Source of the DNA: Marsupella aquatica
Lineage: Eukaryota > Plantae > Marchantiophyta
Direction of reading: 5' to 3'
Assembly: GCA_973895155.1 (NCBI GenBank)
Contig: OZ316899.1
Span: 310,001 to 374,000 of the forward strand
DNA length: 64,000 nt
Below the pieces are notes generated by a model. The model was not told the DNA's origin and ran no database searches. It was given only the letters and a program-made list of their open reading frames with translations. Within the stretch, counting starts at the first letter, position 1, and the number at the start of each line of letters is the position of its first letter. Positions 24,211 through 56,240 of the stretch are shown piece by piece. The translations under genes and the position numbers were made by a program.

Positions 24211-24276
24211 ACCTAATTGTTTTTTGAGTTCATTTTTTTTAAAATCGCTTTATATATGGCCTAATTTTTCCTAATC

Positions 24277-30400: not shown

Positions 30401-30559
30401 GTAGTAGTGAATGAAAGCTACACATGCTACCTGTTTGGATCAAAATCCCATTCAGAGCATTATGTAGTTTGCTATGAAGAACCAAAATACATTTAAAGGT
30501 CTTCAAACTCAGTATTTGTTCCCATAAAGAACAAGATGGGGTTGGTTTGATAGATTTAA

Positions 30560-34189: not shown

Positions 34190-35270
34190 GTGTGTGATGA
34201 GATCCGGGATTTGCAAGTCATAAGTTCATTATGACATCCTACGCGAGCCACGTATGGCACAATTATGATACTAAAACCCGTGACCCGGCACCACACCATC
34301 ATTGTGGCCACAACGGACCCGAGCCATAGGTCGACATGCGCGCCATTGCAGTGAAAGTGACATTCAGTACAAGTACACACCTTTCACTTTCCGAAGGTCA
34401 TAATGATCCTAGAGCTGAGTAGTCCGGCCTACACGAGCCTCGTGCGGAAAGTGACTGGAACCAACCAACTCCAACCTCGCCTGTTGTTCTCCCACAGTCC
34501 TCAACCCGACAATTAGTACATGCCGTGTGAATATGGGTGTCTGTGATGAGATCCGGGATTTGCAAGTCATAAGTTGATTATGACATCCTACGCGAGCCTC
34601 GTGTAGCACAATTATGATACAAAAGCACCTGTCAATTTAACCTCAATAACGGAGGAAATTGAGCTCATCCCACCCAAATCTCGTGATCCGGCACCAAACC
34701 ATCATTGTGGCCACAACGGACACGAGCTAAAGGTCGACATGCACGCCATTGCAGTGAATATGACATTGAGTACAAGTACACACCTTTCACTTTCCGAAAA
34801 TGATCCTCGAGCTAAGTAATCCGACCTACACAAGCCTCGTGCGAAAAGTGACTGGAACCAACCAACTCCAACCTCGCCTATTGTTCTCCCACAGTCCTCA
34901 ACCCGACAATTAATACATGTCGTGTGAATATGGGTGTCTGTGATGAGATCCGAGATTTGCAAGTCATAAGTTGATTATGACATCCTACGCGAGCCTTGTG
35001 TAGCACAATTATGATACAAAAGCACCTGTCAATTTAACCTCAATAACGGAGGAAATTGAGCTCATCCCACCCAAATCTCGTAATCCGGCACCAAACCATT
35101 TTCACTTTCCAAAAATGATCCTCGAGCTAAGTAATCCGGCCTACACGAGCCTCATGCGGAAAGTGACTGGAACAAACCAGCTCCAACCTCGCCTATTGTT
35201 CTCCCACAATCCTGACCCCGACAATTAGGACATGCCGTGCATCACCAAGTGTCTTCCACGCGAGTCTCGC
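34190..35270. repeat. About 350-400 bp tandem units (about 3 copies) 3' of the Sola-type ORF
   Basis: TGTGATGAGATCCG..ATTTGCAAGTCATAAGTT.ATTATGACATCCTACGCGAGCC recurs at about 34193, 34542 and 34940. Contains CTAC(A/G)CGAGCCTCGTG palindromes. Confidence 0.9.
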
Positions 35271-35284: not shown

Positions 35285-38200
35285 TTAGTTCTCCTCAATC
35301 GTTTCTATAATGTAAACTTTCACACTTTCCAAAACTCTCGCTGGAACTTTTACCTTTGCTTTTGCTTTTGATGTCCATCCGGTGATGGTTGAAGTTGCTA
35401 GGATCCAATCATTCGTGACTGGGGGAATGAGGTAATTGGGATCCCTTTCCCACGTTTGCTTTGAATTAAAGTAGTCCCGATATCTTTCTGATTCGGTTGC
35501 CAAACTCTTGCGATTAAGAGGGCGCCACCATTCAACTTGGAACTCTCCAACATGCGCATCGTTGGGATCTTTTACGACACAATTGATTGCTTTTGCAAGC
35601 CAAAATCGTTGCGGAATTCTGGTTTCAAATTCATCGGTGGGTCGAATAATAACAAATGTATTCTTTTTAATATCTTCTAGAGGACTAAATCTTGACCTCT
35701 CACACTCAGAAGGGTGTCCGACAAAGATTGTTTGCCTCTCTTCTTCATCTTCTTGAAGCTCTCTTTCCAGATTATGCATCACCCCATTGTCTTCGCTTGG
35801 GCTGGTATCCACGTTCTGACCATCCTGACGATACCCAATTCCATGGTTCGTTCGAGGCCAGAATCCATCAAGTAATGGATAATCTACCCCTGCTAGCGAA
35901 GGAGAGCAAAGTGTGTCCTGAAACACAGAAACAATGTTTTCCCAGTATTGAATCTCTGGACTTTGGAGACGATATCCCTCTGATGTAACATCCTTCCATG
36001 CAGTCTTCAGCCATGAGATATAATGGATCAAGTATTCCAAAATGTCATTCGCCTGCTTGTGAGAAGGCTCCATCCGCTTGGAATAAGGACTTCCAATTGG
36101 AAATTTGTATTGGTTTCTCTCTAAGTCAAACAACCAAATTGTTTGACCCTTTGTCGGTAGCCAAGGCGTATCAATTTTCTCTCGATATTGGTAGACTGGG
36201 ACATTCTCCTTCATTGAGAACAAGAATTGAACAGGGTTTAGGGTTTAAACTTCGCGGATGAACCTTGGAACCGGATGTTTCTTCTTGCACTCCCAAACCT
36301 CCGCCATCAAACCAAAAAATGTGGTAAGCTCTCGACTGTAGATCCTTATCCCGACTCTAGAGAAGAAGGCATCCACATCCTCATGAGTGTGCCCCACCAT
36401 CAAAAAGGAAAGAGTTATTGACTCAAACACTCCTCTTAGAACAAGCTCGCTACAGAAAGCCAGAACTGTCTGGTTCTTGTTATCCTTTCCCAAGTTATCA
36501 AGTTGAAGGTGGAGGTGTCGAGGAAGCGCCTTGAAGGGTAGCAATGTTGAAGGCTCTACGCGACTCTCGTGTGGCGCATTATCACCAAGCCCTGCAAAGT
36601 GAGCGAGAGAGATCTTTTTGGTTTCGAGGTATCCTACCTCAAAGGCACACCGATCCAAGAGGGATACAAAGATTGGATCTATGACATCAGAGGTGTTGAG
36701 AGCTAGATCGCCGGTCTTATCTCCCACAAATGATTCGAGATCACGAAATAACTTTGCAAGCGAAGCGACTGTAAAATCAGGATCGCTTGCCCACAAACCA
36801 GAAAGGGCAAAATGTGCATAAATTCCAGGCTCTCGTCCATATGTTAACATCCCCGTCAGCGTCATTGGTAGCGGGATTGATTTGCCTCCTTGGCTCTTGA
36901 GTGTAGAAGTCATTTTAGGGATTCCGGTCTTGGCTTGATCCATTTTATCGTGAATCACAGACAAATATTTGTCGGGCTCTTGGTCCGCCGCAAGTTTTGC
37001 TGCATAGTACATACTCCTGCATGATTGTTGTTCCAACATATGCCGTTTGTGCTTTGCCTTGATTTCTAAAATCTTATCCACCCGTTTCTCCCCCCGAAGT
37101 GTTTCTTTAATGGTCGTGCAGAGATCGCATTTTGCAAAGTTGCTCCGATCTTGGAATTGGAAATTGGGGAAATATTTATCCAAAAGCTTGTAGAAGGTTG
37201 TGAGAGAGGGCGAGTGAATACCCAGGTTTTTGTTAAGCTCGCAAGCCTCTTCAAAAACATCTTTTCTCCCGAAACTTATTGGTACCCTGAAAACAACTTC
37301 CTGCTTGCCTGAAACACCAATTTTGTGAAGATGTGGCATTGGTTTTGCACATTTCTGCAGGATACTTCGAATTGATTCTGTGAACAACACAACGTAGTCT
37401 TTGGTCTTGATGGTCCCTTCATCCCATGAACACCAACTTTTGCCCCCTCCATGTATCGTGAATACATTGTGTAAAATGTTCCTCGAGAAAATCCATGAAT
37501 ATTCCAGAAAGCTTCCTTGCAGATCCTGCTTCCCTTGAATACAATCATGCCTAAGGCGATGGTTTCATCATCACGACAGTGAAGATGATTGAGCACGTAA
37601 GTATGTTGCTCAACATGAGATAGAGCATAGTACTCTTCCCTAATGTCAGTGACAGTCTCACGGAATTTTCGTCGACAACAACTCTGTGAGCAACAATCAA
37701 CCCGATAAAGAGTATCTATGGACACCCGAGACATCTTTTGATTGCGTCTTTTCTCAAGTCATTTTCTCTCCTTCTGGTTTGAATCTTGAGGATTTCTTTG
37801 TTGATTGTTATAGCCACTTTTTGGCTTGATATATGAGAGAATTCTAACTCCCTCATCGTTACCATCATTCCAATCTAAAAGATCACTCAGACATTCCATT
37901 CCAGGCTCAATCCTAGTTTTGTTGATTGGCCATCGAACTGTGCATGGTGATCCATCAACAAATTGAGGGAACAAAACTTTTCCCAAGCCAGCTTCAATAG
38001 CTAGACTCAAAATGTTCACACCAACATGATCTTCCCCAACTCGCTCGTTGTTAATGGACGCGAGAGGATGTGGGTTTATGATGCAACCTCTTGCGAGCAA
38101 GGTTTCTCCATCATCCGCATAGAGAAGGGCAAACTTTTTGAACCATGTGCTACAATCTTTCAGATCCTCCGCAAAAACCTCTGTCCCCTCCAGTCCGGTG

Positions 38201-38550
38201 GCTGATTCAAAATTACCTTGAATATTGTCAACTGGGTCATCAATGACATAAGCTGACTCTGTTTGACCTCCAAGATTCATGTCATTTGCATGGCGGACAT
38301 CTTGCCGACCCCACAAAACAACGGAGTTCACCGACTCTCCTACTAGATCAGCTCCCGGATGTGGATACGGCAGCTGTGCGAGGTGAAAGAAAGCATTGTC
38401 CACCGCCACACTTATCCGTTCTGCTCCAAGCAACATAGAGTGGCAGGTGTCGGAAGGTAGAACACAAAAAACCTTTCCACCAGCAACTGGTTGTTCATTG
38501 ATAAGCAGGTGAACGACTTCTCCAGGTAGAAGTTGCGTTCTTGAAGCCAT
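35285..38550 (-). pseudogene. Sola-type (DUF7869-like DDE) transposase, about 1090 aa, with two N-terminal DUF8039/Tnp1-like domains; one TGA (37759), a frameshift (about 37400), and a TAA in a telomere-like insert (36245)
   Basis: FAKCDLC, HKRH, SVIHDKMDQ, HLHLQLDNLGKDNKNQ.V..F...LV..GVF..I...FLMVGHTHEDVDAFFS motifs. ORFs 38550-37759 and 37734-37276 are in frame; 37390-36245 and 36223-35285 are in frame. Element ends not resolved. Confidence 0.8.
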
Positions 38551-38746
38551 TTTGGATCTGAGGAAAAAAATTGCAACAAAAACATCTTTTAAAACATCCT
38601 ACACGAGGCTCGTGTGAAAAACTCTAACTCTAATCTAAGCAAATATCATAGAACTGAAAATTCAAATCCAGTTTAAACAAACAATGAAGACAGTCATCTA
38701 AAAAGTTGAATGTTCTTTCATTAAAGAGAAAATTCTATTGTATCTT

Positions 38747-39520
38747 AGACGAGGGGAACAACACGAGACTCGTGTAGACAATCAAAAGTCCAATATTCAA
38801 TAGAGATTACGACTGAATCCACACTAGTAGGCTCTTAAACCTTCTATACAGAGATGGATATTTTGAAATGAGTATTCTTCTTAGAGGAACTTTCTATTGA
38901 ACGTTGTATTTGGATAGACGAGGGGAACAACACGAGGCTCGTGTAGACAATCCAAAGTCCAATATTCAATACAGGTTACAACTGAATCCACACTAGTAGG
39001 CTCTTAAACCTTCTATACAGAGATGGATATTTTGAAATGAGTATTCTTCTTAGAGGAACTTTCTATTGAACGTTGTATTTGGATAGACGAGGGGAACAAC
39101 ACGAGACTCGTGTAGACAATCAAAAGTCCAAAATTCAATAGAGATTACTACTGAATACACACTAGTAGGCTCTTAAAACTACTATAGAGAGGTGGATATT
39201 TTGAAATGAGTATTCTTCTTAGAGGAACTTTCTATTGAACGTTGTATTTGGATAGACGAGGGGAACAACACGAGGCTCGTGTAGACATTCAAAAGTCCAA
39301 AATTCAATAGAGATTACTACTGAATACACACTAGTAGGCTCTTAAAACTTCTATAGAGAGATGGATATTCTGAAATGAGTATTCTTCTTAGAGGAACTTT
39401 CTATTGAATGTTGTATTTAGATAGACGAGGGGAACAACACGAGACTCGTGTAGCAAATCAAAAGTCCAAAATTCAATAGAGATTACTACTGAATATACAT
39501 TAGTAGGCTCTTAAAACTTG
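38747..39520. repeat. 169-bp tandem repeat, about 4.6 copies, upstream of the Sola-type ORF
   Basis: AGACGAGGGGAACAACACGAG(A/G)CTCGTGTAG starts at 38747, 38916, 39085, 39254 and 39423. Confidence 0.96.
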
Positions 39521-42500
39521 TATAGTTAAACCACATCCCAATGGGAAAGACTCAAGCTTGCACATACATTCACATACTAACACAATCACTAAAACAAAAT
39601 TGAAAATGACAGGAGAAAAACTGTACAAGAAACTGTACCGATGCAGTACCTGAAACAACAGAGCACGCTTTAACGACAGCCCCACCTCGGACTGAAGGCA
39701 CGAATGAGTCAGGTCTCAAACAATGACTTGGACGAAGTGGTCTGTCACGTTATATAGTGAGTGGGGGTGCGAGAATTTCAGACTAGCTTTCAACTCTACC
39801 AGATTGTCGTGTAGTACTTTTTTGTGGCGGCGTGGTGTGTGGTGAGCCTATGGACCGCTTGAGAGACATTGCATATCGTGCACTCGCACCACTCGTCCAT
39901 CCATCCGATTTTCCAGCCACATTGAGGGAGATAGACCGTGTATTTTGTAGGAGGAGGAGAGTGTTGAGGATGCACCCTATTGAGAGGGGAGTAGTGGTGA
40001 CCACTAGACCCCAATCGATTGACTCCCGTCCACCTAGGATTGTTCCGCCCCAATGCCCTTTTCTTGATGCATCGTTCCCGGGGCACCAAGACAGTTGCGA
40101 GGGAGAGCCTTGGACATCTTAAAGGACTCCTTCCCAACACAGTTTGGACTCCCTATGGACCTCCCGCTTCAAGAGCCTATTATAGTTTAGGACCGCCCAT
40201 GGGTCATCCTCCCCTCCACATTGGGGACTCATGTAGGACTTGGAGTATTTGCTCTTGTGGATATCGTGGTCCCTACCGGTTGTGCACCCAATGTTTGCCT
40301 CAGTTGTTTCCATTCTATGGGCCCAAGTATTTGGAGGCGAGATGGCGCATCTTGTCCCGATAGTGCCCAACCTTTAGTCGATATGACATGTCACTAAACT
40401 TGGACCCTAGGTATGCTCAAATTGATGGTTACCCTGTAGTATCACACTATGGACATAAATAAACATTTAAAATCCAAAACTTGGTATTCGTTCCCATGGA
40501 AGAACATGTAAGAAATGATTTTCTATGATTTAGTACTTATGAATGACTTAAGTAATAAAACACAAAGGTTGAGCCTTTTACTATGGTTTCTCAGCAAGGC
40601 ATAGTTTTAAATGTTTGCTTAACATTGTAATTAATCCGTGGACCCCCATGTTCATCCAGGAATGTGTGTTTGATGAAGTGAATTCAATTTTCAACAAGGC
40701 GGTAATCGACGGTTTTGAGTCTCCCGATGGTCTTGGTGTGTGCTCGTACAAAAGAAAACGCCCAAAATATAGAGGAGATTTATCAATGGAAGGTTGAATA
40801 TGGAGGAATTGAGTTTTTTGACGATTTTTGCTTACACATTGGAGAAATCGTGTTTCTATCATTCATGATTGATCGTTTGTGAGTTACATTGAGCATTATC
40901 GTCACAAGACAGACTGGAGAACAACACTTAGCTATTGGCAAAAGAGCGCTTGTCGATTCGGTGGGAAGAACACACAAAACAAACGAATCATCGCTTCACA
41001 TGAAGGATTTGTAGTTTTTTTATTTAAGAAAGCTATGGTGTGAGAGGGAGACCAACGATTGTAACTTTGACATAGAGGCTGCATTTGGCGTCAATCTGTG
41101 TTCAGAGTGAGCTAGCTTCAGTTGAAGACTAGAGGAATGCGAACAATTCAAGCCGGGAAGCAAGCATTATGGACAAGGGATGGCGACATAATCAAAGAAA
41201 TCAATTTTCAACGACTAAGTTTGTGACGGTGATGAGATTGTGATATCTCTTAATCGAGAAAGGGTTTCCAATGAGCCTCAGATTGACAAATTTTGTCAAG
41301 TTCCAAATGAGTTTTTGAATTTCTTTGCCTTTCCAATGAGTGTGAGTAAAAGAAATATTGATCATGAGTCCATGAATTCTTTTAGCTTTCCAACATTGAG
41401 TCCGACATTGACAAATTGTATGTCAGATTTTGTCACGATACTAAAGAGATCATGAGGTTTTCAATCTCTGCAGCTTTCTAATGTGTGGTCAACATTGAGA
41501 TTATTCGTCAAGAATTAGAGAGATCATGAGTATCTGAATTTCTCTAGCTTTCCAATGAACCTAACATTGATAGATTTTGTCAAGTACTAAGGAGATGATG
41601 AGTTTTTAATTTTACTTTAACTTTCCTTGAGTGTGACATTGAGAGATTTTATCAAGACAATACTAAAGAGGTCACGAGATTCTAAATCTTGATCTTGAGT
41701 TTTCCAATGAATCAAACATTAACAGATTTTATCAAGTACTAAGGAGATTGATTATTTAGTTTTACAATGTGAAGCCAAATGGGTTTTAACTATGTACATT
41801 TCTATTGGTTGGTTACTTTTTTCAAGCTTGCAAACAATTAAAAAATACAAGCATTTTGATATAAAACATTGATATATCTTTGACAAACATCAAAATGGTA
41901 ACTTTATTTTACTAAATGACATATCTCCCTTTGTACTTTGGTTTTTTTACGTTCAATATTTACGGCATGGCGTCCCAAAAATTACGTTGCTTTTGCCACA
42001 AAGAATGTGCACGTTTGTTATTGTTAAAAGTAGGATCATTCCTATTTGTGGCTGGTTGTGGTGATGTGGTGCAACCTCGTGACAGGGAATTTGCAAGAGA
42101 CCTCTCATGGGGGTCCGTAAAGAAAATTAACAAATGAAAACAATTAATAAAATACAATAAAATCTTGAGGTATGGTGAGGGAGTCTGGAAAATACCAAGG
42201 TAACTTCTCAACATCACTTAATTTGAGATGATTTAAAGTGAAGAATCCGCAAGGACATTTCTGGAATGAAATGCTTTACTAGGATGGTTAATTAAAGTGC
42301 TGTCAACACATCTCAACCTTTCCATCCAAGGTACTAAGTTAGGATTAACAACCAATCACTTCAGCATCCAATCGGTATTTTGAGTCACGAATATCAAGCA
42401 CCATCATCAACAACTTAAAGTCGTAGATAATTGGGTGATAATATTCTTTGCACCTCGTGCACAAGCAATGTTATGCCAAAAATATATGCATCAAGAACTC

Positions 42501-43400
42501 AAGAATGTATAGCCTTCACCAATTAAGGAATCTATCTCCACACATCCAAAAGATTCATCAATCACAAAGTTTTACTTCTCTGGTCTGAAATCTCAACATT
42601 CAAACACAAGGAAGGGGAAGAAATCCTCTGTATATTGTACTCATCAACAATATAGAGTACTTGCTACAAATGGAGGTAACAAAGTTACAATCTTGCAACT
42701 GAGCGCTCATGAAATTTCTTCACACAAGAAATGACATGAAAACTACTACTTATATGCTAGCAGGAACTAAAGGGAAAAGAGATAATGAAAGGACATACCC
42801 TTTCATATCTTAAGGGTCATAAACTAAAGTAAAAAATATGAAAATATGATATAAGAGTACTCAAGGTTCACTAGAATGTTCATGGAATGAAAAACTAACC
42901 AAAAGTTATCCCTAATGTAAACTGGAGTAAAAGTGTTTTTGCACTTTTGTGACAAAACTAATAAATATCAACTTTGTCTGAATTTTAATTTCTAACATAA
43001 AGGTCAGAATGAGGTGAAACGTTTTTAGGTGGAAGAATTCCATACATGCTACATGCTGGAAAAATTTCAGACTTTTTTGAGATGTCTAAGTGCCTTAATA
43101 AAATAGGTGAAAAGTGTTGTTGGATAAAAAATACACTTTTTTCGGAAAATTTTCTAAGTGTCGGAAGCGCCTTTGCGCTTTGGCATAGTAGCGCCGTTGC
43201 GCCTTTGCGCTTTTACGCTTAAGCAAAACTAAAAATGCTATAACTTCTAAATTACATGTTGGTTTAAGCCGATATTTTCAGGGTATGGTCTGCTACATAA
43301 GGGCTATCTCTTGAAAAAGTATGAAACTTTTCTAACTACTTTAACTATTTAACAAAAAATGGTGGAGATTGACTAATCCTGAGTTGAAGGATGGAGTAGG

Positions 43401-43994
43401 TCAATCCTCCTGAAGTAGTGCTGACTGGTCCGGTTGTTGAAAACTCCTGAATGTCTCAGTTTGAATCACATCTCGAAGGAAATCCATAACCTGTGTATCA
43501 TGTCGATCAAATGGAAGAGATCTGATTTGTCGTTCAGCATTGAGAATGTTCACCTTGCTAGCTTGCATATAGATGCCGACTAGATCATAACTACAACAAG
43601 TGGTATGATAGTTGCGTGGAAACTTGTTGATGAAGGTGTCAGAGTCCTTGGCAAGTGACAGAAGTGGAGTGACACTAGGTAACAGTTCCCGCCACTTTAG
43701 GGTGTAATGAGCCAACCGCTGGGAAGTGATGTTGTTCCAGATTCTCTGGCTCTCAGCAACTGGTGTGATAAATTGTTGAACAAGAAAAGGTTCCTCTGGT
43801 AGGACACCATGGTCGACTTGATATCGTTTGTTGGTTTGTCTCAAAAAGTTGATGATGAATTCCAAGACATAGGCAGGTAAATTCCCGAAGTATGCCAGGG
43901 CTAGATCTCCATTCTCTAGTACAATGTGTCCAACCAAGATCATGACAGCAAGAATAGGACAAAAATATTTAGCCTTTGTCCAGATCTCATCCAT
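43401..43994 (-). CDS. Unknown protein, second coding block of the insert; homologue at 31986-32375
   Basis: 197-aa ORF with a clear by-eye alignment to the second copy; homology extends upstream across a stop. Confidence 0.55.
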   Translation of the reverse strand: MDEIWTKAKYFCPILAVMILVGHIVLENGDLALAYFGNLPAYVLEFIINFLRQTNKRYQVDHGVLPEEPFLVQQFITPVAESQRIWNNITSQRLAHYTLKWRELLPSVTPLLSLAKDSDTFINKFPRNYHTTCCSYDLVGIYMQASKVNILNAERQIRSLPFDRHDTQVMDFLRDVIQTETFRSFQQPDQSALLQED

Positions 43995-44450
43995 CTCTGC
44001 TATCTCTAGGCGGGTGACATCCTTTAGATGAAGCTTCAGGATATAGAGACATTCAACTCTCTTTTTATGATAGTACTGCCAAAATTCTAAAATGGGAGGA
44101 GTTCTAAGGTTTGAAACTTTGACAAACTCAGCAAATTGTGTAATATTCTCCTTAGGGGTTTTAGGGTCAATATGGAGTGTAGGAATGAAATGGACTAGGT
44201 TCAGGCAGAGTTACAGAGGCTGCTCTTAACCTCTCAATAGAGTCAACTATCTCCTCAGGTTCATAGATCAATAAGTTGCTTAACTTATCAATAATTTGCT
44301 GATTAGATTCTACTCTCAGTTCATCAGCCGTTGGTTTGCTGAACATGAAGGGTCTCTTATGGGATCTCATAGAAGGGGTCAAGCTATCTCTAGATAAATT
44401 TTGAGTTGGGACTGTAGGTGATCAAAGAGTAATAGGGACAGATATGTCAA

Positions 44451-45413
44451 CTACAGATACAGGAGGTGGGGGAACCTCTGGTTCGGATGTATACTCATCG
44501 AGATTGGAATTGAGGGGGGTGTAAAGTCTTCTATCCTGATTGAGATCTTCAAAAGGGGATAGAGGGTTATCAGGAATTGGTGAAGAGGTACTTCTGGGTT
44601 CCACAAGTGGTTCTCTATGGGTAAGAGGGGTAACCTCTGAACAGATAGGGGGAACCTCTGGTTGAACTTCATCAGCATCTTCTCCTTCAGTATCCTTGTT
44701 TCCTGATTCACTAAGATCAAATTCATCAAGCAATCTGATCGCTCCTCTTGTTTGCCTGGAAGTAAGCAATTCCCATGAAAGTACAACTGGCAAAGATAAG
44801 CAGGGAGAGTAGTGAACTCATCCGTTTTCACCTTCTTTACTTGAGATAAAGTAACCTGTCTTAGCAACAAGGCCCAATTTATCTGAGCAACTCCCTTCCA
44901 ACTTGCCACAATAGTATTGGCAAGTGACACAGGTATCATATGTGGTCGAATAGGATGGAGAATTGGAATCAAAAACTCTAAAATGATTTTAAGAGTATAA
45001 TCGGTGCACTGGTCCATTTTCCATCCATGGCGAACGTTTCGAGTTCCAGAAAAATAAGGTTTCGCAGTCTCTCCTTGTCGTGAGTGTAGGTTGTCTCCTT
45101 CGGCGGGACAGCCAAAAGCATCAGCAACAAATTGCATAGTCCAGAATTCTGGATTCGCCCAAGCAGTTCCCACCATACCAACTTCGATTCGTGCCCCATC
45201 ACTGAAATCCTTCAGAAAACTCAATGAAGTTACGGACCAAGGCAGAGTGAGTAATTTACTCAGGTGCATGACCGCCAATGCTTCCTTCAAAACGTGCAAG
45301 CTTCTTTTCATCATAGGGTATGTCACAGGGACGGCCCTAGGTAAAGGAACTCCTCTTGCAGTCATCTCTCCCCCTTCGTCTGCCATAGTAATAAGCCCGG
45401 TAATAAGGAACAA
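44451..45413 (-). CDS. PMD/Athila-ORF1-like retrotransposon extra ORF (frameshifted 3' end)
   Basis: LLTLPW, VADAFGCPAEGD, YF.G...GW...C...LEFL.PIL.P, INWA motifs, distantly matching the central domain of 56241-58619. Confidence 0.65.
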   Translation of the reverse strand: MFLITGLITMADEGGEMTARGVPLPRAVPVTYPMMKRSLHVLKEALAVMHLSKLLTLPWSVTSLSFLKDFSDGARIEVGMVGTAWANPEFWTMQFVADAFGCPAEGDNLHSRQGETAKPYFSGTRNVRHGWKMDQCTDYTLKIILEFLIPILHPIRPHMIPVSLANTIVASWKGVAQINWALLLRQVTLSQVKKVKTDEFTTLPAYLCQLYFHGNCLLPGKQEERSDCLMNLILVNQETRILKEKMLMKFNQRFPLSVQRLPLLPIENHLWNPEVPLHQFLITLYPLLKISIRIEDFTPPSIPISMSIHPNQRFPHLLYL

Positions 45414-47520
45414 GGCGTTATCACCAACTATCGATCCAAAGAGATCAATGCCAAGTGATCCGCCGTTGCGCTCTTACTCTGTTGCGCCCTCACACCTTTG
45501 CTCTGAAATGTTGTTGCGCGGTTGCGCTGTTGCACTTTTCCCCCAAAATGCCGTTGTGCTTTTTCTCCAAAGCGCCGTTGCGCTTTTACGCTCAAAACGC
45601 TCTGTGTAACGCACGGTCAAACTTGGTAGCACCAATCCTCCTTTTGTGCTTTGAGAACATCGATAGTAGTTTCTTTTGGCTCGTCTCACCCCTACCTAAT
45701 TACTCAGGGTATTATCCATTAATCTGCCTAACTTAAGTCTTAACCTTACTTATATCTAAAAGTAGATTAATTGGCTATGTTTAATCTATTTTTAACTACA
45801 AAAAATTTTAAATTTTTCATTATTTCTAAGTTTCTAATTTAGACGGCTATTACATACCCACCTTGCACGGGGAACTTGTTGGGTTACATCAACAACACTA
45901 TTGGTTCTCGACGTTTAGGGTTTAGGCCAAACGTTGAGTGGCACGAGTTCCATGACCAGAGTCACCCTTGTTTGCCTGTAGCATGCACACATTACATCTT
46001 GACACATGCTACCGGCACCATTAGAGTAGGGGCAGAGATTCTCATAGATTATGATTGGCATTGATGTTTACATGTGTACATGACATATTCATTATGGGTG
46101 ACCCTTGCATTTTTCATTATTGATGTTTCATTGTAAGCTTTATCACGGAAACCCTTCTCTAATTGTGATCTGTCATTGCATATTGAAAACTCTAGGATAG
46201 TGTACATATTACTCCCACACCTCACCCATCAATGATGACTACATCAGCCCGTGCCTTTCACGTACGTGCCACCTTACATTTCTCAGATGAGGAGGATGCT
46301 GAGGGTCAGCCCCTTGACCATGATGAGATGGACGATGAGGATGAGGAGTACCATGATGCATATGATGGAGAGTTGGATGATGATGTTGATGATGAGGGAG
46401 ATGAGGGAGATGACCCTATCCTTGAAGAAGATGCCTTTGCCCACCTTGTTGATGTTCACTTTGGACCTCATGCACCTGACGCCGAGCACCCTATCATGGA
46501 AGTGGATCAAGAAGATTGGGATCACTTGGAGACTGAAGCCAGAACACCACTATTTGAGGGATCTCCATCCTCACGGTAAGGTTGTCCTAAAATTATCACA
46601 ACTCTGGAATTTCATCCAGTGAATATTGGGCAGTCTAAGTTGTAGTGCCAGGCATGCCATCTAGCTACTTGGACTAACTGCAAAAAGTCTGGTGTGTGTG
46701 GTTTTGCAAATCCAGGGTGGGTGCAACTTTGTTGATGTTGAATTTGCAAGGAGTTTTCAATGGTTCGGATGTCCATACAGATGCACTCTTCCAATTGTTC
46801 CACGACAAACTCTTGCCCCAACCAAACACTCTCCCTGGATGTGTGAGGGAGGCTAAGAAGTTGTTAGCCTCAATTGGATTGGCTTTAGAGACTATCCACA
46901 TGTGCCCAGGTGGGTGCATCTTGTATAGAGGGGTGTACAAGGATCACACTCACTGCCCAGAGGAACACTGTATGCTTCCACGGTATCGACCAGACACCAT
47001 TGGAGACAAGATTGCAGAAAAGGTAATGTTTTCCTCAACACAATGTGAGAACTGTTAGACGATGGTTATAATTCATACACCAACAACATAAGAATAATCT
47101 TTTCATGAGCCAATGTGGCTTATAAGGTGTTACACATTGGATGGTTATAACTACCTTCTCCTAGTCTCATGGCTCTCTATATCTAGTCCCTATATACCCC
47201 TTTGTATCATTCTATGAGTTAGGGTTAAGTGTATTCTAACACTCCCCCTTGGTTACTTTAATAGAAAGTAACCATTCTATAGAATAGAGTTAATCCTAAT
47301 TCAGGGTATATTAGAACTTATAAACGACATGATCTCATTAAAAACCCCCTGCTTTCTTCTTTGGGGTAAAAAGAGTATCACTGTCTTACATGTAATAAGT
47401 TCGTTAAGTTGAGGGGACTGAGTATATGCTAAGTAGTAATGTGTCATTCTACCAGGTATTACGGGTTTAGGGTGATCGTAATAATAATGCCTGAAATGAG
47501 TAGTCGAGGGCATTTAGGTA

Positions 47521-50500
47521 CTAGGGAAAATCCGAGAGTTTGCGTAGGCCGATTCCTGTCGAGTGTGCTTCGTGCAGGACACGAGGTAAGGGCTTCGTGA
47601 ATAGGTCGGCGCGATTGTCTTTGGAAGGTATCCATTGAACGTTAATCTGATCGCCATGCTGTTCATGTGTATGGAAGAATTTAGGTGCTATGTGCTTAAT
47701 TCGATCTCCCTTGATAAATCCTTTAGCAATTTGGTCAACGTAGGGTCTGTTATCTTCGTAGATGATTGTTGGTTTGGTGAGGACTTCTTGACCGGTGGAG
47801 ACGTGGATATGGTTGATAAGTTGGCGAAGCCATAAGCATTCGCGACTAGCTTTGTATAGGGCGATTATTTCCGCATGGTTGGAGGAAGTTGTTGTCAGTG
47901 TCTGCTTAGTACTTTTCCAGGATATTGCCGTGGATCCTTGCAGGAAGACATAGCCCGTCTGGGACTTGGCATCATCGGGATCGGAGAGGTAACCTGCGTC
48001 AGCGAAACCAATCAGTTCATTAGGCATATCTTTAGGAAAGTAGAGGCCAGTGTCAATCGTACCTTGGAGGTAGCACAAAATTCTCTTGATACCGTTCCAA
48101 TGTCTTATCGTTGGCTGAGAGTTGTGGCGAGCCAACAAGTTGACAGCGAAGGAGATATCCGGGCGTGTCTGGCTTGCCAGGTACATCAAGGCGCCTATAG
48201 CTGAGAGGTAAGGTTTCTCTGGGCCCAAGATCGGTTCTTGTTCAGTTCTGCGCTTGTACATATCTTTGGATGAATCTAAGGAGCGAAGTTCCATAGGTGT
48301 TGTGATAGGGTATGACTTGTCCATATTAAATTGTTTTAACATCTTCCTGGTATATGTGGATTGGTGAATCAGAACGCCATTAGGTAAGTGTTCGAATTGA
48401 ATGCCAAGGCAGGAAAGGGGTGTCCCAATATCCTTCATTGCGAAGATGCCTTTGAGTGTTGTAATTGTTTGTTCCATAAGAAGCTTAGTGCCCATAAGAT
48501 TTATATCATCTACATAGATTGCTATGATAATAAATTCAGTTCCAGCTCGTTTTATGAATAGGCAGGGAGCGATGTCCTCATTCACGAAACCAAGTGCTAT
48601 CATCTCAGCACGGAAGCGCTTGTACCAAATACGGCCACTCTGTTTTAAGCCATAAATGGATCGAAGAACCTGTACAGCAAATGCTTTCGCTGGTTTTTGA
48701 GGTTTAGGTATCCTCTGATGAATGAGGTTTACCTCTATGGGTAAACCCAGGGAATTCAATGAAGAATTCGTTTGATGTTCACCATGAGCAATTTGCTTTT
48801 CATGTACATTCTGATCCTCTGATAAGTGTTCAGTTATTTGTTCAGGTACCAGTGGGCCTGATTGAACAAGGTAATCCTTAAGTTCCTGTGTAGGAACAAT
48901 CTTATCAATACCCGACTGTATGTCCGGGGATAGAGTAGTTTGATGCTCCCCCTTAATGTGGAAGGTTACTCTTTGAATTAGCTCGGGTGGAGCTTTCATA
49001 TGGATATCAGTGTCGAGTATGCCATAAAGGTAAGCGGTAACAACGTCCATAAGGTGCATTAGGAGTTTGTGTGTAAGAGTGAAGGCAATCAAGAATCTGT
49101 AAGTGATAGAGTCCATAACCGGGGAATGAGTCAAGTCATAGTCTTTTCCATAGATTTGCGTATAGCCTCTAGCAACGAGTCGGGCTTTGTAGCGGACTAC
49201 TTCGCCTGCTGCATTTCGTTTACGTACTAGTGTAATTCTGTATCCTGTGAGATGTTGTTCAGCAGGTACAATTTGAATCTGTCCAAATACTTGGCGGCTT
49301 ATGAGTGAGTCGAGCTCGGAGTTAATGGCAGAGTCCCATTTAGGCCAATCGGGACGTTGTTGAGCTTCTTTAATATTCCGGGGATCTGGTAAGTCACTGG
49401 ATATATCTTGGGAGATAAGAAAGGCAAAATGTTCGTCAGGTTCAGTTATATCTCTAGGCCATAAGTGCCCGGTATGCATGTAATGTATTGATATTTCTTC
49501 GTTATCGACCAGTGTAGTTCCTGGTGAACGTAAGTAGAGCTGTGTTGATACAGGTTTCTTTTGTCGTGATCTGGGGTCTTTGGATCCAGGGGGTCTGCCT
49601 CTCTTTGCCTTGGGGGCATGGTCTGTGGCTCGGGTATCGGGCATGGAAATTCTGGCAGGGACGTTAGCTGCTTCTATATGGGATTTCATGGCAGCAGTAG
49701 CATCATTAAAGGCGTCTGGTATTTTTTCCATGATTCGGTGAAGATTTAGGATGCACTTTACTTCGTCATTTCTGAGTTGTGTACGGGGGTCATTCCATAA
49801 TGGGTCCTTAGTTGTCCATTCTAACGTAGGGGTTAGAGTGTTCTGTTTGTAGAGTTGTGCAGGGGTAAGGAGTGGGGGAAAAATATCCTCACAGAATTTA
49901 CAATCCTGGTATCTAGCTCGGAACACATCAGCTGTAGTTGGTTTGAGGTACCTGACGATTGAAGGAGAGTCGAATCCCACATAGATGCCGCGTTGCCGCT
50001 GTGGTCCCATTTTAGTATGTTTAGGGCCTAGAATTGGGACGAGAACAAGACAACCAAACATTTTCAGGTGTGTAACGTCTGGTGTAGATCCATATGCTAG
50101 CTGATGTGGTGTGTAAGTGTTGAAGGCCGATGGTCTGTACCTTAATAATGCGGCACCGTGGAGTACAGCATGTCCCCAAGCTGTAAGTGGCAATTGTGTC
50201 TGTAGTAATATAGGTCTTGAGATAAGTTGTATACGTTTGATCATTGCTTCTGCAGCGCCATTTTGGAAATGTACATATGGTACCGAGTATTGAATGGTGA
50301 TACCCAGGGCTTGGCAGAAATCGTCGAAGGCAGGTGATGTGAATTCACCAGCATTGTCGATTCTTATTGTCTTGGTAGCTGAGTCAGGGAATTGAGTTCT
50401 TAGGCGTATAATCTGAGTTAGTAGGCGAGCAAATACCAGGTTTCGGGTGGAGATTAGTGAGACCGAGGACCATTTCGTGGATGAGCATATCATCACTAGA

Positions 50501-50640
50501 AAGAACCGAAATGGTCCACTTGGTGGGTCTATTGGGCCGCAGACATCCACGTTTATCTGTGAGAGGAAATCAGGTATGTGGTAGGTGTTTTTAGTGGTGG
50601 CAGGCATTGTAATCAATTTGCCTTGTGCACATGGGATCAT
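47521..50640 (-). CDS. Copia integrase-RT-RNase H, separated from gag-PR by a 1-nt frameshift
   Basis: DVCGP, IRIDNAGEF, QNGAAE, YKARLVARG, MDVVTAYLYG, YGLKQSGR, YVDDI, GFADAGY, IYEDN, ADLFTKPL. Confidence 0.93.
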   Translation of the reverse strand: MIPCAQGKLITMPATTKNTYHIPDFLSQINVDVCGPIDPPSGPFRFFLVMICSSTKWSSVSLISTRNLVFARLLTQIIRLRTQFPDSATKTIRIDNAGEFTSPAFDDFCQALGITIQYSVPYVHFQNGAAEAMIKRIQLISRPILLQTQLPLTAWGHAVLHGAALLRYRPSAFNTYTPHQLAYGSTPDVTHLKMFGCLVLVPILGPKHTKMGPQRQRGIYVGFDSPSIVRYLKPTTADVFRARYQDCKFCEDIFPPLLTPAQLYKQNTLTPTLEWTTKDPLWNDPRTQLRNDEVKCILNLHRIMEKIPDAFNDATAAMKSHIEAANVPARISMPDTRATDHAPKAKRGRPPGSKDPRSRQKKPVSTQLYLRSPGTTLVDNEEISIHYMHTGHLWPRDITEPDEHFAFLISQDISSDLPDPRNIKEAQQRPDWPKWDSAINSELDSLISRQVFGQIQIVPAEQHLTGYRITLVRKRNAAGEVVRYKARLVARGYTQIYGKDYDLTHSPVMDSITYRFLIAFTLTHKLLMHLMDVVTAYLYGILDTDIHMKAPPELIQRVTFHIKGEHQTTLSPDIQSGIDKIVPTQELKDYLVQSGPLVPEQITEHLSEDQNVHEKQIAHGEHQTNSSLNSLGLPIEVNLIHQRIPKPQKPAKAFAVQVLRSIYGLKQSGRIWYKRFRAEMIALGFVNEDIAPCLFIKRAGTEFIIIAIYVDDINLMGTKLLMEQTITTLKGIFAMKDIGTPLSCLGIQFEHLPNGVLIHQSTYTRKMLKQFNMDKSYPITTPMELRSLDSSKDMYKRRTEQEPILGPEKPYLSAIGALMYLASQTRPDISFAVNLLARHNSQPTIRHWNGIKRILCYLQGTIDTGLYFPKDMPNELIGFADAGYLSDPDDAKSQTGYVFLQGSTAISWKSTKQTLTTTSSNHAEIIALYKASRECLWLRQLINHIHVSTGQEVLTKPTIIYEDNRPYVDQIAKGFIKGDRIKHIAPKFFHTHEQHGDQINVQWIPSKDNRADLFTKPLPRVLHEAHSTGIGLRKLSDFP

Positions 50641-52190
50641 GTCTCATGTTTAGATGATGGATGGACTCCTTGGGGGATGCCCGTGGTGTTCTTGAGGATT
50701 TTGTGGTACATTCCTGGGCCAGGGTGGCCAAGGCGGAAGTGCCATAGTTCTGTGGGTGATAAGGGTTGTCGTTGGGAATTGTAAGACATGATCTTAGTGA
50801 CATAAACGCCGGGGGGATGGAGTGGTAATGTCTCTAGTGTGATGGGGCCATTATCAGTTTCTCGAAAAATCTGTAGAGAGTTTATGTGGTTGTCGGGTGC
50901 CGAGCGTATATGGAGATTGTTTTGGCGGACATCATGGAAACTTAGTAAGTTCCGTGTCACGAGTGGGGCATATATGGCAGATGCAATTTTAATGGTTGTG
51001 CCTTGAGGAAGGGTAAGTTGGGCAGGTCCATGGCCTTCCTCTAATTGGTTTATACCTGTGATAGTAGTCACAGGTCTATTTGATGGGTATATGTGCTGGA
51101 AATAACATTTATCTTTTAGGATTGAGTGAGAAGTGCCGCTGTCAAGAATGCAAATATCAGCACTGGCGAGAGATGTGTCATTTACTTCATGTGATATTAT
51201 GTGAACCTCTGGTGGGGGAGGTGCAAGCGTGTATTTGGAGAGATCATCATCAATCTCCAAGTGATGTGCGGCTGTTAAGGTGTTGGATGTTGTGAGGGAG
51301 GCCTGGTATAGTTTGACTAGGTGAGCTTGAACTCTGCAGTTCTTTTGGATATGCCCTGTCCCACCGCAACGGAAACACTTGGGCTGATTATTTGTGGGAT
51401 AATTCTGTGCAAGTTTATTTGGCATATGGTTGGGGTTACGATACCAAGAATTCATGGGAGGCTTGAAGTTTTTGCCTTTGTCTGTGCAAAATTGTTGTCT
51501 CTTGTGGAATTTATTAAAACGACTTGGATTGCCTTTAAATTGGCCACGAGGTCGATTGTGAGAGGAATTACCTCTATTGGTATTCGTGAATTGTATTTCC
51601 GGTTTAGGAAGCGTGCCTGGTGGTCGCTCGCGAGAGTTCCTCAAAAGGAGGAGGTCATTCTTTTCAGCCAGGAGCATGACTGCAATCAAATCTGAGAATT
51701 GGGTGAAATGGCATTGTCTATAAATCTGCGATAACTGCATGTTCGCTGCCGAGAATGTAGAAAGAGTCTTTTCAATCTTTGCTGCTTCATCGATTGGTTC
51801 GCCGCAGACTGCTAGCTGAGCAGTTATCCGAAATAAGGCGCTATTGAATTTGGCAATTGTAGGGTAGTCTAGAACTCGTAAATGAATCCATTCATTTCGT
51901 GCAGCTGGTAGGGAAATTAGACGCAGATGGTTGAACCTCAATTTGAGAGCGTCCCATAGGGCTCGGGGATTAAACTCTATACGGTATTCAAGTTGTAGTT
52001 CGGCAGCGAGGTGATGGCGAATGATGTACAGTGCCTGAGCCTTTTGTTGTAATGTGCCATTGATATCTGCTAAGATAATGTCGCCGAGGCCTTTCATGTT
52101 GAGAACAATTTCTGTATTCTGTGCCCAAGATAAATAATTGTCGCCATCTGTTGCGAGCAATGGGAATTGGAGCTTCTCCAATGTTGTCAT
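50637..52190 (-). CDS. Copia gag-protease (to the start of the integrase zinc finger)
   Basis: CFRCGGTGHIQKNC knuckle, ILDSGTSHSI protease, LWHFRLGHPG. Confidence 0.92.
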   Translation of the reverse strand: MTTLEKLQFPLLATDGDNYLSWAQNTEIVLNMKGLGDIILADINGTLQQKAQALYIIRHHLAAELQLEYRIEFNPRALWDALKLRFNHLRLISLPAARNEWIHLRVLDYPTIAKFNSALFRITAQLAVCGEPIDEAAKIEKTLSTFSAANMQLSQIYRQCHFTQFSDLIAVMLLAEKNDLLLLRNSRERPPGTLPKPEIQFTNTNRGNSSHNRPRGQFKGNPSRFNKFHKRQQFCTDKGKNFKPPMNSWYRNPNHMPNKLAQNYPTNNQPKCFRCGGTGHIQKNCRVQAHLVKLYQASLTTSNTLTAAHHLEIDDDLSKYTLAPPPPEVHIISHEVNDTSLASADICILDSGTSHSILKDKCYFQHIYPSNRPVTTITGINQLEEGHGPAQLTLPQGTTIKIASAIYAPLVTRNLLSFHDVRQNNLHIRSAPDNHINSLQIFRETDNGPITLETLPLHPPGVYVTKIMSYNSQRQPLSPTELWHFRLGHPGPGMYHKILKNTTGIPQGVHPSSKHET

Positions 52191-55100
52191 AGTCGATGAA
52201 AATTTTGTGGTGTACTTGGCGGAAAAAATAAATTAAAAAATGTGTCTTGGGGAATGTCGTTCGATGCTTCGTTCACAGGAATACGAAAAAATTCACAAGA
52301 GGCCTATGAGTAGCTCGAGAGTTGTTGGAGGAGCAAAATCATGTGCTGATAACGTGTTAGACGATGGTTATAATTCATACACCAACAACATAAGAATAAT
52401 CTTTTCATGAGCCAATGTGGCTTATAAGGTGTTACACATTGGATGGTTATAACTACCTTCTCCTAGTCTCATGGCTCTCTATATCTAGTCCCTATATACC
52501 CCTTTGTATCATTCTATGAGTTAGAGTTAAGTGTATTCTAACAAGAACAAGAAAAAAAATTCCAAAAAAAAATGTGAGAACAAGAAAGTCTGACTTTTAA
52601 TGTTGCATTCTTTCAAACAACGTCGTATATGACTATGTTACTTGGTTACTTTACGTCGTCCATCTCACTTTACGTCTTTCTACCTGAGGTTTTTTTGTTT
52701 TTACGTCGTATGGGATGCAGTAACTAACGTTGCATGGTACATCGTATGTAAGAAACGTCGTCTTCCACGATGTTCGTGTTACTAATACGTAGTGTGGAAG
52801 GACGTTTAGTGTGATTGTCGTCAAATTGACGACGTTGCATTGGATCTGGCAGGTTTTTCGTTATTTCTCAATCACTCCCCGACTTCAGCATCTCTACCGG
52901 CAAAAGCACTTATCCACACTACAGACTTGGCATGTGGAGAACAAATCCCCACCAGGGATAATGCAATACCACCAAGATAGTCTAGCCTGGAAGTACATTG
53001 ATGCCACTTGGCCAAATTTTGCCCAGGAGCCAAGAAATGTTTGTTTGGGGTTGGCAATCGATGGAGTGAACCCATATAAACAATGACGGAAGCCTAAGTC
53101 CATCTGGCCTGTTCTTTTGATAATTCAGAACATCCCTCCATGGTTGGCAATGAAGAAGGGTCATGTGCTTCTATTAGCTATAATTCCTGGACCCAAGGCC
53201 TGTAAGAATCCTGATATCTGTTTGGCTCCAGCTTATGAAGAGCTACATAATCTGTGGGAGGTTGGAGCAGTGACAACAGATGTCACTCCTGAAGCAGACA
53301 ATGGCAGGACCTTCAATATGAGGGTAATGATCACTCATTGCACCACAGATGGTCAAGGTAATTCATTGGGCAACCCAATGGCTATTGGTTGCACAATGTC
53401 ATGTACAATGCAAGTGTTGGGGTTATTTGTGGTCTGAACATGGTTCAATGAAATGGCAGGTATGGGGACAATATCTGGCCTGAAGGTGGCAGGTTTTCAG
53501 CTTGCCCTTCATGTGGCCCAAAGTTGCGTGGGAGGTACTCAAGACTACTGCACAAAACCACATATGAGGGCAACAGGGTCCGGTTGGCAATGGATGACCA
53601 CTTGCGACAAAACACAACACATTGGACAGAGACTGAATTGCAACCATGTCCTAATGGCCCTTCAGCTGAAGGACAAATTCAAATGGCAGAGAAGGTGGAA
53701 GCAAAGTTACTGAAACCCAAGGATTGTGGAGTAAACCGACGCGCAGCTATGTGGGACTTGCCTTATTGGAGGGTAAGTGATAGAAGTGCATGGTTCCTTT
53801 ACAGCAAATTAGACCAATAAAATGCTTAATTTAGAGATTGCAACTGATTCAATATGCTGCTTCAATTTCCAGAGTTTCCAAGTTCGATGCTTGTTGGACC
53901 CCATGCACATTGGAGTGAATGTTGCTAAGAACTTGGTGAAGCACATTTATGGGACAAATGACACTCGTGGAGTCCGAGAGGATGCTGAGAGGGTTGGAAT
54001 AGTGAAGAGTTGTTGGATAACACGTACTGGGGAGAAACCTCCTGGTCCTTGGATTTTGCCAAGAGAGGTTTTGAAGGACATGAATGGGATGATAAGCAAG
54101 ATGAAGTTCCCTAGCCATTACGGAGCTAGTTTTTGTGGGTGCACTACAAGGAATGATCACATACCCCCAATAGGGTTGAAGGCTCATGATTATCACAAGT
54201 TGATACAACATGTGCTACCAGCAGTCTTGCGTTGTTGTGATGATTCCCAGGAGCGTCGTTTACTCTGATATGAGATGTGCTCCATTTTCAGGTTAGTATG
54301 ATAACGTACCCTCTCTTCCATTGCTCTCTTGCAAGTTCTTGTTACCGCTGCAGGAGCTCTGTAATTCAACAAGTATTTCAAACTCATTTTTCTATGGCCC
54401 TATGTGGATCTGATATACAAAATCTTTGATGGTTTTGAGGAGGAACATAGGTGGGTATGCGCTAAGGAGATAAAGGAGTCTGAGATTCCTTTGATGAGGG
54501 AGAGGTCAGCTCACGTGATGTGCAATATGGAGAAGGTGTTTCCCCCATGCATATTTGACACGCAATTGCATTTACTATGTCACTTGGTGGATGAGGTCGC
54601 GATTGCTGGTCCTGTCCATGCACGTTGGATGTATTGGGTAGAGCGCTTCATGAAAGTGCTCAAGTCCATGGTGCGTCAACCAGCTCGACCAGAGGGAAGT
54701 ATGGCAACGGGGTATATCATGTCGGAGTGCCTCTTTTATTCCGGAGGGATGATAGGGAGTTTGGACGCAGAAGCTCCCACAGCTTGGGAAGAGGCACAAG
54801 ATGATGACAATGGTGGGTTACGTTTGATGGGTGCATCAAAAAAGCGTTCACTACATGACGACATACTTCGACTACAGATCCACAATTATGTGTTGGGAAA
54901 TCGCCCAGAGATGTCTCAGTGGAGGTAGTTGTATAGGTACATATATGCAACTCTATATATTGTGGGTTCAAGGAGCACTTCTTTGGATTGTGCAATATTC
55001 TCGTGGATCCATACATTTTTTGTAGTGCATTCTTTGAGCAGCAACCCATAGTTCCACGACGGTATGCATTATTTTGCGTATGGGCATTGGAGCACATGGA

Positions 55101-55868
55101 TAGGCTCCTTGCAGAGCATGGACCCTTATCCATTCCCATTGATGTACAAAACATCATTAGGGGACCAGGGTTGTGGGCAACAACCCATACACACATGTAT
55201 GAGTCAGGGCACCACTTTCGCACTTGGAGGACAGATCACATGAAGAAGAGTACATGTAACTCAGGAGTGTTCATGTTGACAGACCCAGGTGATGTTGAGA
55301 TTCCCTATTGTGGCACTGTATTGGATATTTTAGACGTTCACTTTGGGTCATTTACTGCTACTGTGTTAGAGGTGCGGTGGCACAAATCCATCACGTCACC
55401 TCCACATAGAGCCACCATGGTGAAAGATGAGTGTGGGTTCTATTGGGTAGACACGACTCGTGTAGCACCATCCGGGATTGAGGTTAGTGACACTATGTGT
55501 ATTTCCTAGTGTGACGCCGCCGGTACGGCGGTTAATGAGTGATTCGGTCTAACTGCGCTCGGCACGTGCGTTAGGAGTGTCTTAGGCCGCTATTATTAGC
55601 ATAACGACAATATTTAGGTAATCATTATGGGTAGGATATCATTAGGCAATAAGGGGGAATTCAGGTTCGGACTGGCGGCTGGTCGCTATTCGCACACCCG
55701 GGTTACGAGCGTGGAGGGGCCCCTCCCTCGGGTCCGTATAACGAACTTAAGGAAGTGGCCACTGACACGCGCTGACTCAGACTGGCGGAGTGGCCGACAC
55801 ACCACAAGCGTGAGCGGTTCAGCCTATGGGCGTCGAGGGGACGTCGGGGGATCGACAAGCCCTCAAGG

Positions 55869-55876
55869 TATAAAAG
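55869..55876 (+). promoter_or_regulatory. TATA box of putative LTR promoter
   Basis: TATAAAAG about 360 bp inside the element start and upstream of the extra ORF. Confidence 0.5.
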
Positions 55877-56240
55877 GGGAGCCAACCCTTTGTAGTGCAC
55901 CAGTCCATCAGTCCACGCGCCAGCTTCGACCCTAGCTCTCTCGTTCGCTCTAAGTTGCCACTACTATCTCCTCTGAATGTTGCACACGATCCTCTCCAGC
56001 TCAACCATTCGATTCTGGACGCAGTTCCTATCTACCGGAAGGCACTTGGCCGACTCATTGAAACACGCCAACCCGCGCCGATACAAAATCGAACGCGAGT
56101 ACGAGAGAGCCATCCGCCTAGCAGGACGACACCACTACATCCTTAACTTTGACTACCCGTCTCAGAGTGAGCTTTATTGACCAGCAGAGGTATCCGGGTA
56201 CTTCTTCAACGGAGACAAATATATCGGGTTCTGGGAAGCA

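Follow-up and report, generated by a model that had tools for sequence, protein, structure and literature searches.

Structure of the locus

The window analysed here is a 64,000-nucleotide stretch of the liverwort Marsupella aquatica (assembly GCA_973895155.1, contig OZ316899.1, positions 310,001 to 374,000 of the forward strand; coordinates below are those of the window). It holds two genes for SET-domain proteins, SET-1 and SET-2, each followed by a transposase gene of the tnp2 type (TnpD-1 and TnpD-2), and the elements to which these pairs are assigned are named CACTA-1 and CACTA-2 after the CACTA (En/Spm) group of DNA transposons. Quite probably, a bryophyte clade of tnp2-type CACTA transposons had an accessory gene in its ancestral gene complement, and SET-2 is a decayed copy of it. 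The features of the two elements are as follows.

19543-30409, plus strand: CACTA-1, complete element; 5' end CACTACAACAC, 3' end GTAGTAGTG; AAT duplication at 19540-19542 and 30410-30412
24310-24534, plus strand: SET-1 gene, exon 1; acidic, Ser-rich stretch and CxCxxC...H zinc-finger motif (Transpos_assoc type); GTAAGT donor
24646-25476, plus strand: SET-1 gene, exon 2, preceded by a GT-AG intron; linker and SET domain, the SET frame being 24886-25473
25709-29062, plus strand: TnpD-1 transposase in three open stretches (25709-26884, 26973-28250, 28562-29062)
40086-40434, plus strand: SET-2, 5' part, pseudogene; two TAG stops and a frameshift; ends ...IDGYP at the TACCC site
40435-45854, no strand assigned: insertion splitting SET-2; TG...CA ends, 5-bp TACCC duplication, 5,420 bp
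45855-46064, plus strand: SET-2, 3' part; second TACCC copy, then PPCTGNLLGYINNTIG...GAEILIDYDWH and stop
46232-46575 and 46716-47052, plus strand: N-terminal exons of TnpD-2; GT-AG intron 46576-46715; cut at 47052 by a copia element
47053-52543, minus strand: nested Ty1/copia long terminal repeat (LTR) retrotransposon; 189-bp LTRs 99% identical; 5-bp AGAAC duplication; gag, integrase and reverse transcriptase frames
52793-55506, plus strand: rest of TnpD-2; Transposase_21 52793-53434, DUF4218 54365-54925, coding tail to 55506

CACTA-1 is a CACTA/En-Spm element by its CACTA terminal inverted repeats (CACTAC... and ...GTAGTG), its 3-bp duplication and its tnp2/TnpD transposase, and it shows TTGCGAA-type subterminal repeats at either end. 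SET-1 sits within the boundaries of the element, and homology with a copy from Sphagnum jensenii (L001) runs across 20779-29016. The SET domain scores 28.6 bits against the Pfam SET profile (gathering cut-off 22.4), and TnpD-1, starting 232 bp behind the SET-1 gene, matches Transposase_21 (7e-39, 133.7 bits), DUF4218 (3.7e-34) and DUF4216 (2.7e-08). Upstream of the SET domain, the SET-1 gene carries a TAG at 24883-24885, a position occupied in all relatives by the Trp of a GRWG motif. This Trp-to-stop change truncates the zinc finger-SET protein of a structurally complete element, from which no full protein is possible.

CACTA-2 is old and badly degraded, with three nested insertions interrupting it. 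Its transposase scores above the Pfam cut-offs for Transposase_21 (43.2 and 66.7 bits) and DUF4218 (104.3 bits), carries an in-frame stop at 53084-53086 inside Transposase_21, and is 37-47% identical to TnpD-1, comparable to the about 41-43% between SET-2 and SET-1. The original prediction, made from the sequence of the window, had described a second, divergent CACTA element; this stands with regard to the divergent tnp2-type transposase beside SET-2, whereas recognisable ends are missing. It had also stated that the two transposases differ in intron content, and indeed the intron at 46576-46715 keeps the frame of TnpD-2, while TnpD-1 is continuous at exactly that point. The distance between the SET-2 stop codon (46062-46064) and the first Met of TnpD-2 (46232) amounts to 168 bp, as against the predicted 170 bp or so.

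Reconstruction and decay of SET-2

Used as a tblastn query against the window, SET-1 (24886-25473) retrieved three collinear pieces of SET-2, located at 40101-40271 (42% identity), 40298-40438 (30%) and 45858-46058 (40%). With E-values of 3e-11 for the linked first two pieces and 3e-07 for the third, compared with 0.46 for the next match in the window, the alignment of the SET-2 peptide with SET-1 is significant, a point on which the prediction could have failed. On their own, the SET-2 pieces reached no Pfam threshold; the GxG motif and the catalytic Tyr are present (GLGVFA, EILIDY).

SET-2 is split by 5,420 bp at 40435-45854 (TGTAG...TTACA), with TACCC copies at 40430-40434 and 45855-45859. 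In P0053, the closest intact relative, residues 151-196 align as far as ...IDGYP at 40435, and residues 195-267 pick up again at 45855 with YPPxTGN, the overlap of two residues corresponding to the duplicated TACCC. The join originally proposed, that is, removal of 40435-45854 together with one TACCC, gives a SET frame collinear with both SET-1 and the intact P0053. Correct as it was, this reconstruction was incomplete, having missed two stops and a frameshift in SET-2 and the TAG in the SET-1 gene. The first SET-2 stop is an in-frame TAG at 40188-40190, where relatives have Trp; the frameshift lies between 40272 and 40297; and the second stop, a TAG at 40361-40363, replaces a Gln of P0053.

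Reading 40435-45854 as a large intron would be the obvious alternative to an insertion, and it draws on a GT following the Pro codon at 40436 and on a pyrimidine-rich tract with an AG ending at 45842, which together allow an in-frame splice. Such a splice would, however, add TAITYP and with it a second Tyr-Pro that is seen in no relative, and the directly repeated TACCC, together with the TG...CA termini, matches a target-site duplication. Moreover, SET-1 and nine other lineages are continuous at the split point, no family member has an intron there, and SET-2 is broken by stops and a frameshift in any case. We therefore consider an intron highly implausible and treat the segment as an insertion. 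Within it, no internal LTR pair or direct repeat pair was detected even with 7-nt words, no Pfam domain was found, and its 319-residue reading frame returned no protein relatives; we read the insertion, with some reserve, as a solo LTR or a non-autonomous element of the LTR type.

The TAG at 24883-24885 in SET-1 and that at 40188-40190 in SET-2 both replace Trp and are both G-to-A transitions, as expected from deamination in methylated, silenced repeats.

Linkage of SET and transposase at other loci

Genomic context was taken for family members spanning the diversity of the SET family. At nine further independent loci, a zinc-finger exon, a SET gene and a gene with Transposase_21 and DUF4218 follow each other on one strand, with SET identities to SET-1 between 34% and 78%. 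The identities below refer to SET-1 and TnpD-1; L004 recurs almost unchanged as L005-6, and L007 as L008-9.

L001: Sphagnum jensenii; SET 78%, TnpD 74-80%
L002: Logan read assembly; SET 39%, only the TnpD N-terminus on the contig, about 180 bp after SET
L003: contig CBCUJL010000043.1 of the Calypogeia fissa assembly GCA_965154635.1; SET 78%, TnpD 78-81%
L004 (repeats L005-6): Logan read assemblies; SET 47%, TnpD 55-57%
L007 (repeats L008-9): Logan read assemblies; SET 50%, TnpD 41-44%
L010: the liverwort Riccia sorocarpa; SET 43%, TnpD 35-68%
L012: metagenome contig from ENA; SET 34%, TnpD 38-50%
L013: metagenome contig from ENA; SET 34%, TnpD 32-48%
L014: metagenome contig from JGI; SET 45%, TnpD 54-61%

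The layout of the clade comprises the 5' end, an exon with the CxCxxC...H motif, a linker, a SET domain of about 195 residues that ends two or three residues past the catalytic Tyr, a spacer, and TnpD with Transposase_21, DUF4218 and DUF4216. The spacer between SET and TnpD measures about 0.2 kb in the clade and 1.4 kb in Riccia, where three gene models (P0103, P0132 and P0136) even fuse residues of the SET family and Transposase_21 in one predicted protein.

Searched with a profile of the family, 1.84 billion representative proteins yielded 152 clusters at E <= 0.001, 42 of them at E <= 1e-30; ordinary cellular SET proteins did not score. Named family members come from Sphagnum, Riccia sorocarpa and Calypogeia fissa. 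The best relatives of SET-1, with 62-82% identity, are found in Sphagnum jensenii, S. balticum, S. magellanicum, S. troendelagicum and S. tenellum, and the family is multi-copy in Sphagnum, with clusters of up to 360 member sequences across five species. Lying inside the boundaries of its element and having hundreds of copies in Sphagnum, SET-1 is an accessory gene borne by a transposon. For annotation, this is a warning that hundreds of "SET domain-containing proteins" in the Sphagnum and Riccia gene sets are transposon genes and not host chromatin regulators.

Weaker relatives (E-values of 3e-8 to 2e-4) with a C-terminal ...ELF-x-NYEF occur in Adiantum nelumboides (P0174-P0187) and Ginkgo biloba (P0153). 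The Adiantum copies are 92-99% identical over the SET part and differ in their N-termini, which suggests a repeated element there as well. Two bacterial-looking profile matches, P0165 and P0192, showed multiple short matches as well as unrelated domains and were rejected as spurious.

Co-divergence, selection and origin of the linkage

Maximum-likelihood trees were built for SET and TnpD from 10 loci. Both hold the groups {win1, L001, L003}, {L012, L013} and {L004, L014}, with L007 next in both, and they lie at a Robinson-Foulds distance of 4, the maximum being 14. The SET tree is compatible with the TnpD data (approximately unbiased (AU) test, p = 0.20), conflicts between the trees fall at weakly supported nodes, and pairwise SET and TnpD identities correlate with r = 0.85. 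The paired trees, which had been proposed as a check of the linkage, thus have most clades in common. Shared clades and correlated identities are the pattern predicted by co-inheritance and speak against independent recent captures: SET was probably acquired once, early, and has diverged together with the transposase since.

The opposite history is one of convergence, with one host SET gene recently taken up by each of two CACTA families on its own. It would agree with the habit of plant CACTA elements of picking up host gene fragments, and relatives that stand alone among host genes in Calypogeia could be taken in its favour. SET-1 and SET-2 are, however, only about 41-43% identical, with their transposases diverged likewise; position, orientation and upstream zinc-finger exon are the same at nine further loci; the SET and TnpD trees agree in most clades; and no close host SET gene was found, only 152 clusters matching among the 1.84 billion proteins. 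Convergent capture is accordingly very unlikely.

Among three close copies, the ratio of nonsynonymous to synonymous substitution rates (dN/dS) is 0.24-0.28 for SET, with bootstrap upper bounds of 0.40-0.49, and 0.13-0.16 for TnpD; the non-coding spacer between SET and TnpD can no longer be aligned between copies. As far as these three copies go, the ratios indicate that SET has been kept under purifying selection in lineages that went on transposing. The comparison of SET-1 with SET-2, which the original prediction had put forward for the same ratio, proved uninformative: the value of 0.37 comes with a saturated dS of 1.70 and includes a pseudogene.

With nine more loci, congruent trees and occurrence in two bryophyte divisions, the view of the SET-TnpD linkage as an old, conserved module of a CACTA clade has held up. 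The sequence data support an old pairing that recurs in mosses and liverworts, its age being read from divergence and from the two divisions and not from a dated tree. This distribution could also have arisen by horizontal transposon transfer or assembly contamination instead of age. At a dS of 0.44, the copy from the Calypogeia fissa assembly (L003) is closer to the window than the S. jensenii copy is (0.59), and Calypogeia grows alongside Sphagnum; the L003 contig may be Sphagnum cobiont DNA in a liverwort assembly or the result of a recent horizontal transfer. The Riccia copies, on the other hand, are deeply diverged (43% SET identity), are spread over several chromosome-scale sequences and differ in spacing, and lineages about 60% different in both proteins, with saturated dS, are old in sequence terms by any route. 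As an explanation of the whole distribution, transfer or contamination thus appears rather unlikely, though it deserves to be taken seriously, and we retain an old pairing.

Several further points weigh against an ancestral SET-TnpD module. The ends of CACTA-2 were not found in the window, where inverted-repeat searches of 30-40 kb against 54.9-58 kb gave nothing convincing, and its status as an element is drawn from its transposase. By a narrow margin, the SET data speak against the TnpD topology (AU p = 0.039; Kishino-Hasegawa p = 0.075), and deep nodes are weakly supported in both trees (46-87%). Finally, two Calypogeia fissa genes with about 30% identity (L011:10001-11512 and L015:10001-13589) stand alone, with no transposase nearby and with host genes as neighbours (mL59 and FtsH; Clp protease and PaO). 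One is single-exon and the other has introns, and each has a highly similar second copy on another contig (P0222, 96% identical; P0235, in the same 90% cluster); used as a query for relatives, the stand-alone Calypogeia gene P0111 retrieved only itself. These genes may have been domesticated from transposon copies, or they may represent the ancestral source.

The SET protein

An alignment of 11 intact members, 40-84% identical, has 33 invariant columns, including G52 and G54 of the GxG motif, N140, E188 and Y193. The Asn of the NHSC motif is invariant, with Ser, Asn or Ala standing in for the His of the motif, giving INST, INNT, INSC or INAA; most members end in Y-x-W or Y-x-F, two or three residues after the catalytic Tyr, followed by the stop. 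That IN(S/N)T and Y(E/D)W are family signatures and not decay, as originally proposed, is borne out by the invariance of the motif Asn and of the Tyr of Y-x-W in all 11 intact members.

The AlphaFold model shows a SET fold (predicted local distance difference test score 74, predicted template modelling score 0.70). Searching the PDB with Foldseek gave 255 matches at E <= 0.001, of which the best 50 were all SET-domain methyltransferases with a probability of 1.00; the top matches were LegAS4 with an H3 peptide (3e-07), SETD8 and MLL1. A sequence-profile search of solved structures gave nothing significant, the best E-value being 0.14. From motifs and model we infer that the zinc finger-SET product is a putative active lysine methyltransferase whose most likely targets are histone tails.

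Two features count against activity: the canonical NHSC is not kept, its His being changed to Ser, Asn or Ala, and there is no post-SET or C-terminal flank, the usual helper in closing the lysine channel. The domain could therefore be inactive or depend on a partner. A catalytically dead SET domain might serve as a module binding histone tails or other proteins, or might act on host methyltransferases as a decoy or an inhibitor, and purifying selection would fit any such conserved function, not catalysis alone. We regard this as unlikely, since none of the 11 intact members departs from the GxG motif, the Asn or the catalytic Tyr, and since LegAS4, the nearest solved structure, reads YINFS at the NHS site and has been crystallised together with its histone substrate. 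LegAS4 is a reported active enzyme. Its similarity to the family, described for the Legionella LegAS4/RomA SET domain (PDB 8swi, 5czy; best structural match, Foldseek E = 3e-07, TM-score (template modelling) 0.52 on the query), extends to the alignment of YINFS with the family YINST and to the same ...L-x-x-Y catalytic end. However, sequence identity is only 22-24% (sequence E-value 0.14) and LegAS4 runs on into ankyrin repeats; no evolutionary link is claimed.

If the putative methyltransferase is active, the element would use its SET enzyme to mark chromatin on or close to copies of itself, and such a mark would resist host silencing or prepare the chromatin for transposition. The zinc finger may steer the SET protein to the subterminal repeats of the element itself.

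The upstream zinc-finger exon

The first exon of the SET gene shows CxCxxCxG...H(I/L)xxxG(R/Q)H in all lineages. In five lineages, the top Pfam match of the homologous exon is PF13963 (Transpos_assoc), always at profile positions 33-63; scores range from 12.9 to 22.7 bits (E-values of 1e-4 to 0.13), all under the gathering score of 27.7, which counts against the assignment. Exon 1 of SET-1 in the window gave no PF13963 match, and the transposase reading frame no Transpos_assoc match; upstream of SET-2, a zinc-finger exon was looked for and not found. In Riccia, finger and SET lie within a single open frame.

The order of a Transpos_assoc-like first exon, SET and transposase body hints at a shared first exon with alternative products, and the placement of SET between what appears to be the N-terminal finger of the transposase and its body suggests the same. 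Maize En/Spm makes TnpA and TnpD from one unit by alternative splicing or termination. A more far-reaching proposal, which we put forward with little confidence, is that the zinc finger-SET protein and the transposase would come from one transcription unit with a common Transpos_assoc-type finger through alternative splicing or termination, that the methyltransferase would mark the element's own subterminal repeats, and that the stand-alone Calypogeia genes with introns would be domesticated descendants. If true, this would place a self-targeted epigenetic writer in a family making up several per cent of the Sphagnum genome; CACTA is the most abundant classified repeat class in Sphagnum, with 6.8% of the genome (PMC9946827).

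Comparison with known systems

CACTA-1 has the same CACTA ends, 3-bp duplication and subterminal repeats as the CACTA/En-Spm elements of land plants, and both elements of the window share the transposase domain set with them. Land-plant CACTA elements carry Transpos_assoc at the N-terminus of the transposase, whereas here the SET gene stands between a Transpos_assoc-like exon and the transposase body. Our literature search, which did not cover Repbase reports, found no description of a SET gene in land-plant CACTA elements. SET genes on transposons as such are known already, and a land-plant CACTA element carrying one appears to be new as far as this search shows.

A related case is Plavaka (CACTA/EnSpm) of the red alga Bostrychia, whose accessory gene PAG2 combines a DNA methylase with SET (10.1101/2025.02.11.637652). 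It is likewise an element of the CACTA superfamily with a SET-containing accessory gene, but PAG2 is one of three accessory genes in elements of 17-19 kb, whereas we find a small zinc finger-SET gene by a tnp2-type transposase; the two are set apart by description. HarbingerS and Phytophthora MuDR families are described as encoding SET histone methyltransferases (Kojima and Jurka 2014, as reported in PMC12730594), and SET has also been captured by Helitrons. HarbingerS and MuDR are DNA transposons with a stable SET accessory gene as well, though from other superfamilies and hosts, and were compared by description only.

With VANC, the anti-silencing factor of the Arabidopsis VANDAL elements (MuDR), the family shares the concept of a transposon factor acting on its own chromatin, the proteins being unrelated; by analogy, we hypothesize that the SET protein might act in a VANC-like manner. 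To our knowledge, transposons with chromatin enzymes of their own are rare. They show how mobile DNA fights or exploits host silencing, and if a selected and probably active SET protein has indeed been kept by a bryophyte CACTA clade, its intact copies would offer a concrete experimental handle.

Other features of the window

Within CACTA-1, the region 21080-22618 contains a 398-residue reading frame on the minus strand (21307-22503) that gave no Pfam match. The frame is flanked by two extra clusters of repeats of the TTGCGAA subterminal type, and in the S. jensenii copy the region is conserved with 75% nucleotide identity. Either a second gene of the element or a nested derivative may be present here.

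The copia element at 47053-52543 lies within the coding sequence of TnpD-2 and is young and apparently intact, with long gag and pol frames. GC-rich DNA (51-58% GC) begins with TGTGACG straight after the last coding piece of TnpD-2 and occupies 55510-64000; it carries a 792-residue coiled-coil frame and a frame for a gag-type aspartyl protease (60780-61907), and CACTA-2 is probably cut short here by an LTR retrotransposon.

The stretches 35285-38550 (minus strand) and 34279-35099 hold long minus-strand frames, one of them with DUF7869 (2.5e-32), and an adjoining 397-bp tandem repeat of 2.1 copies; a further transposon probably lies here, between CACTA-1 and CACTA-2. Directly upstream of the SET-2 region, at 38746-39524, there is a 169-bp tandem repeat of 4.6 copies with 95% identity, every unit of which contains CACTAGTAGGCTC.

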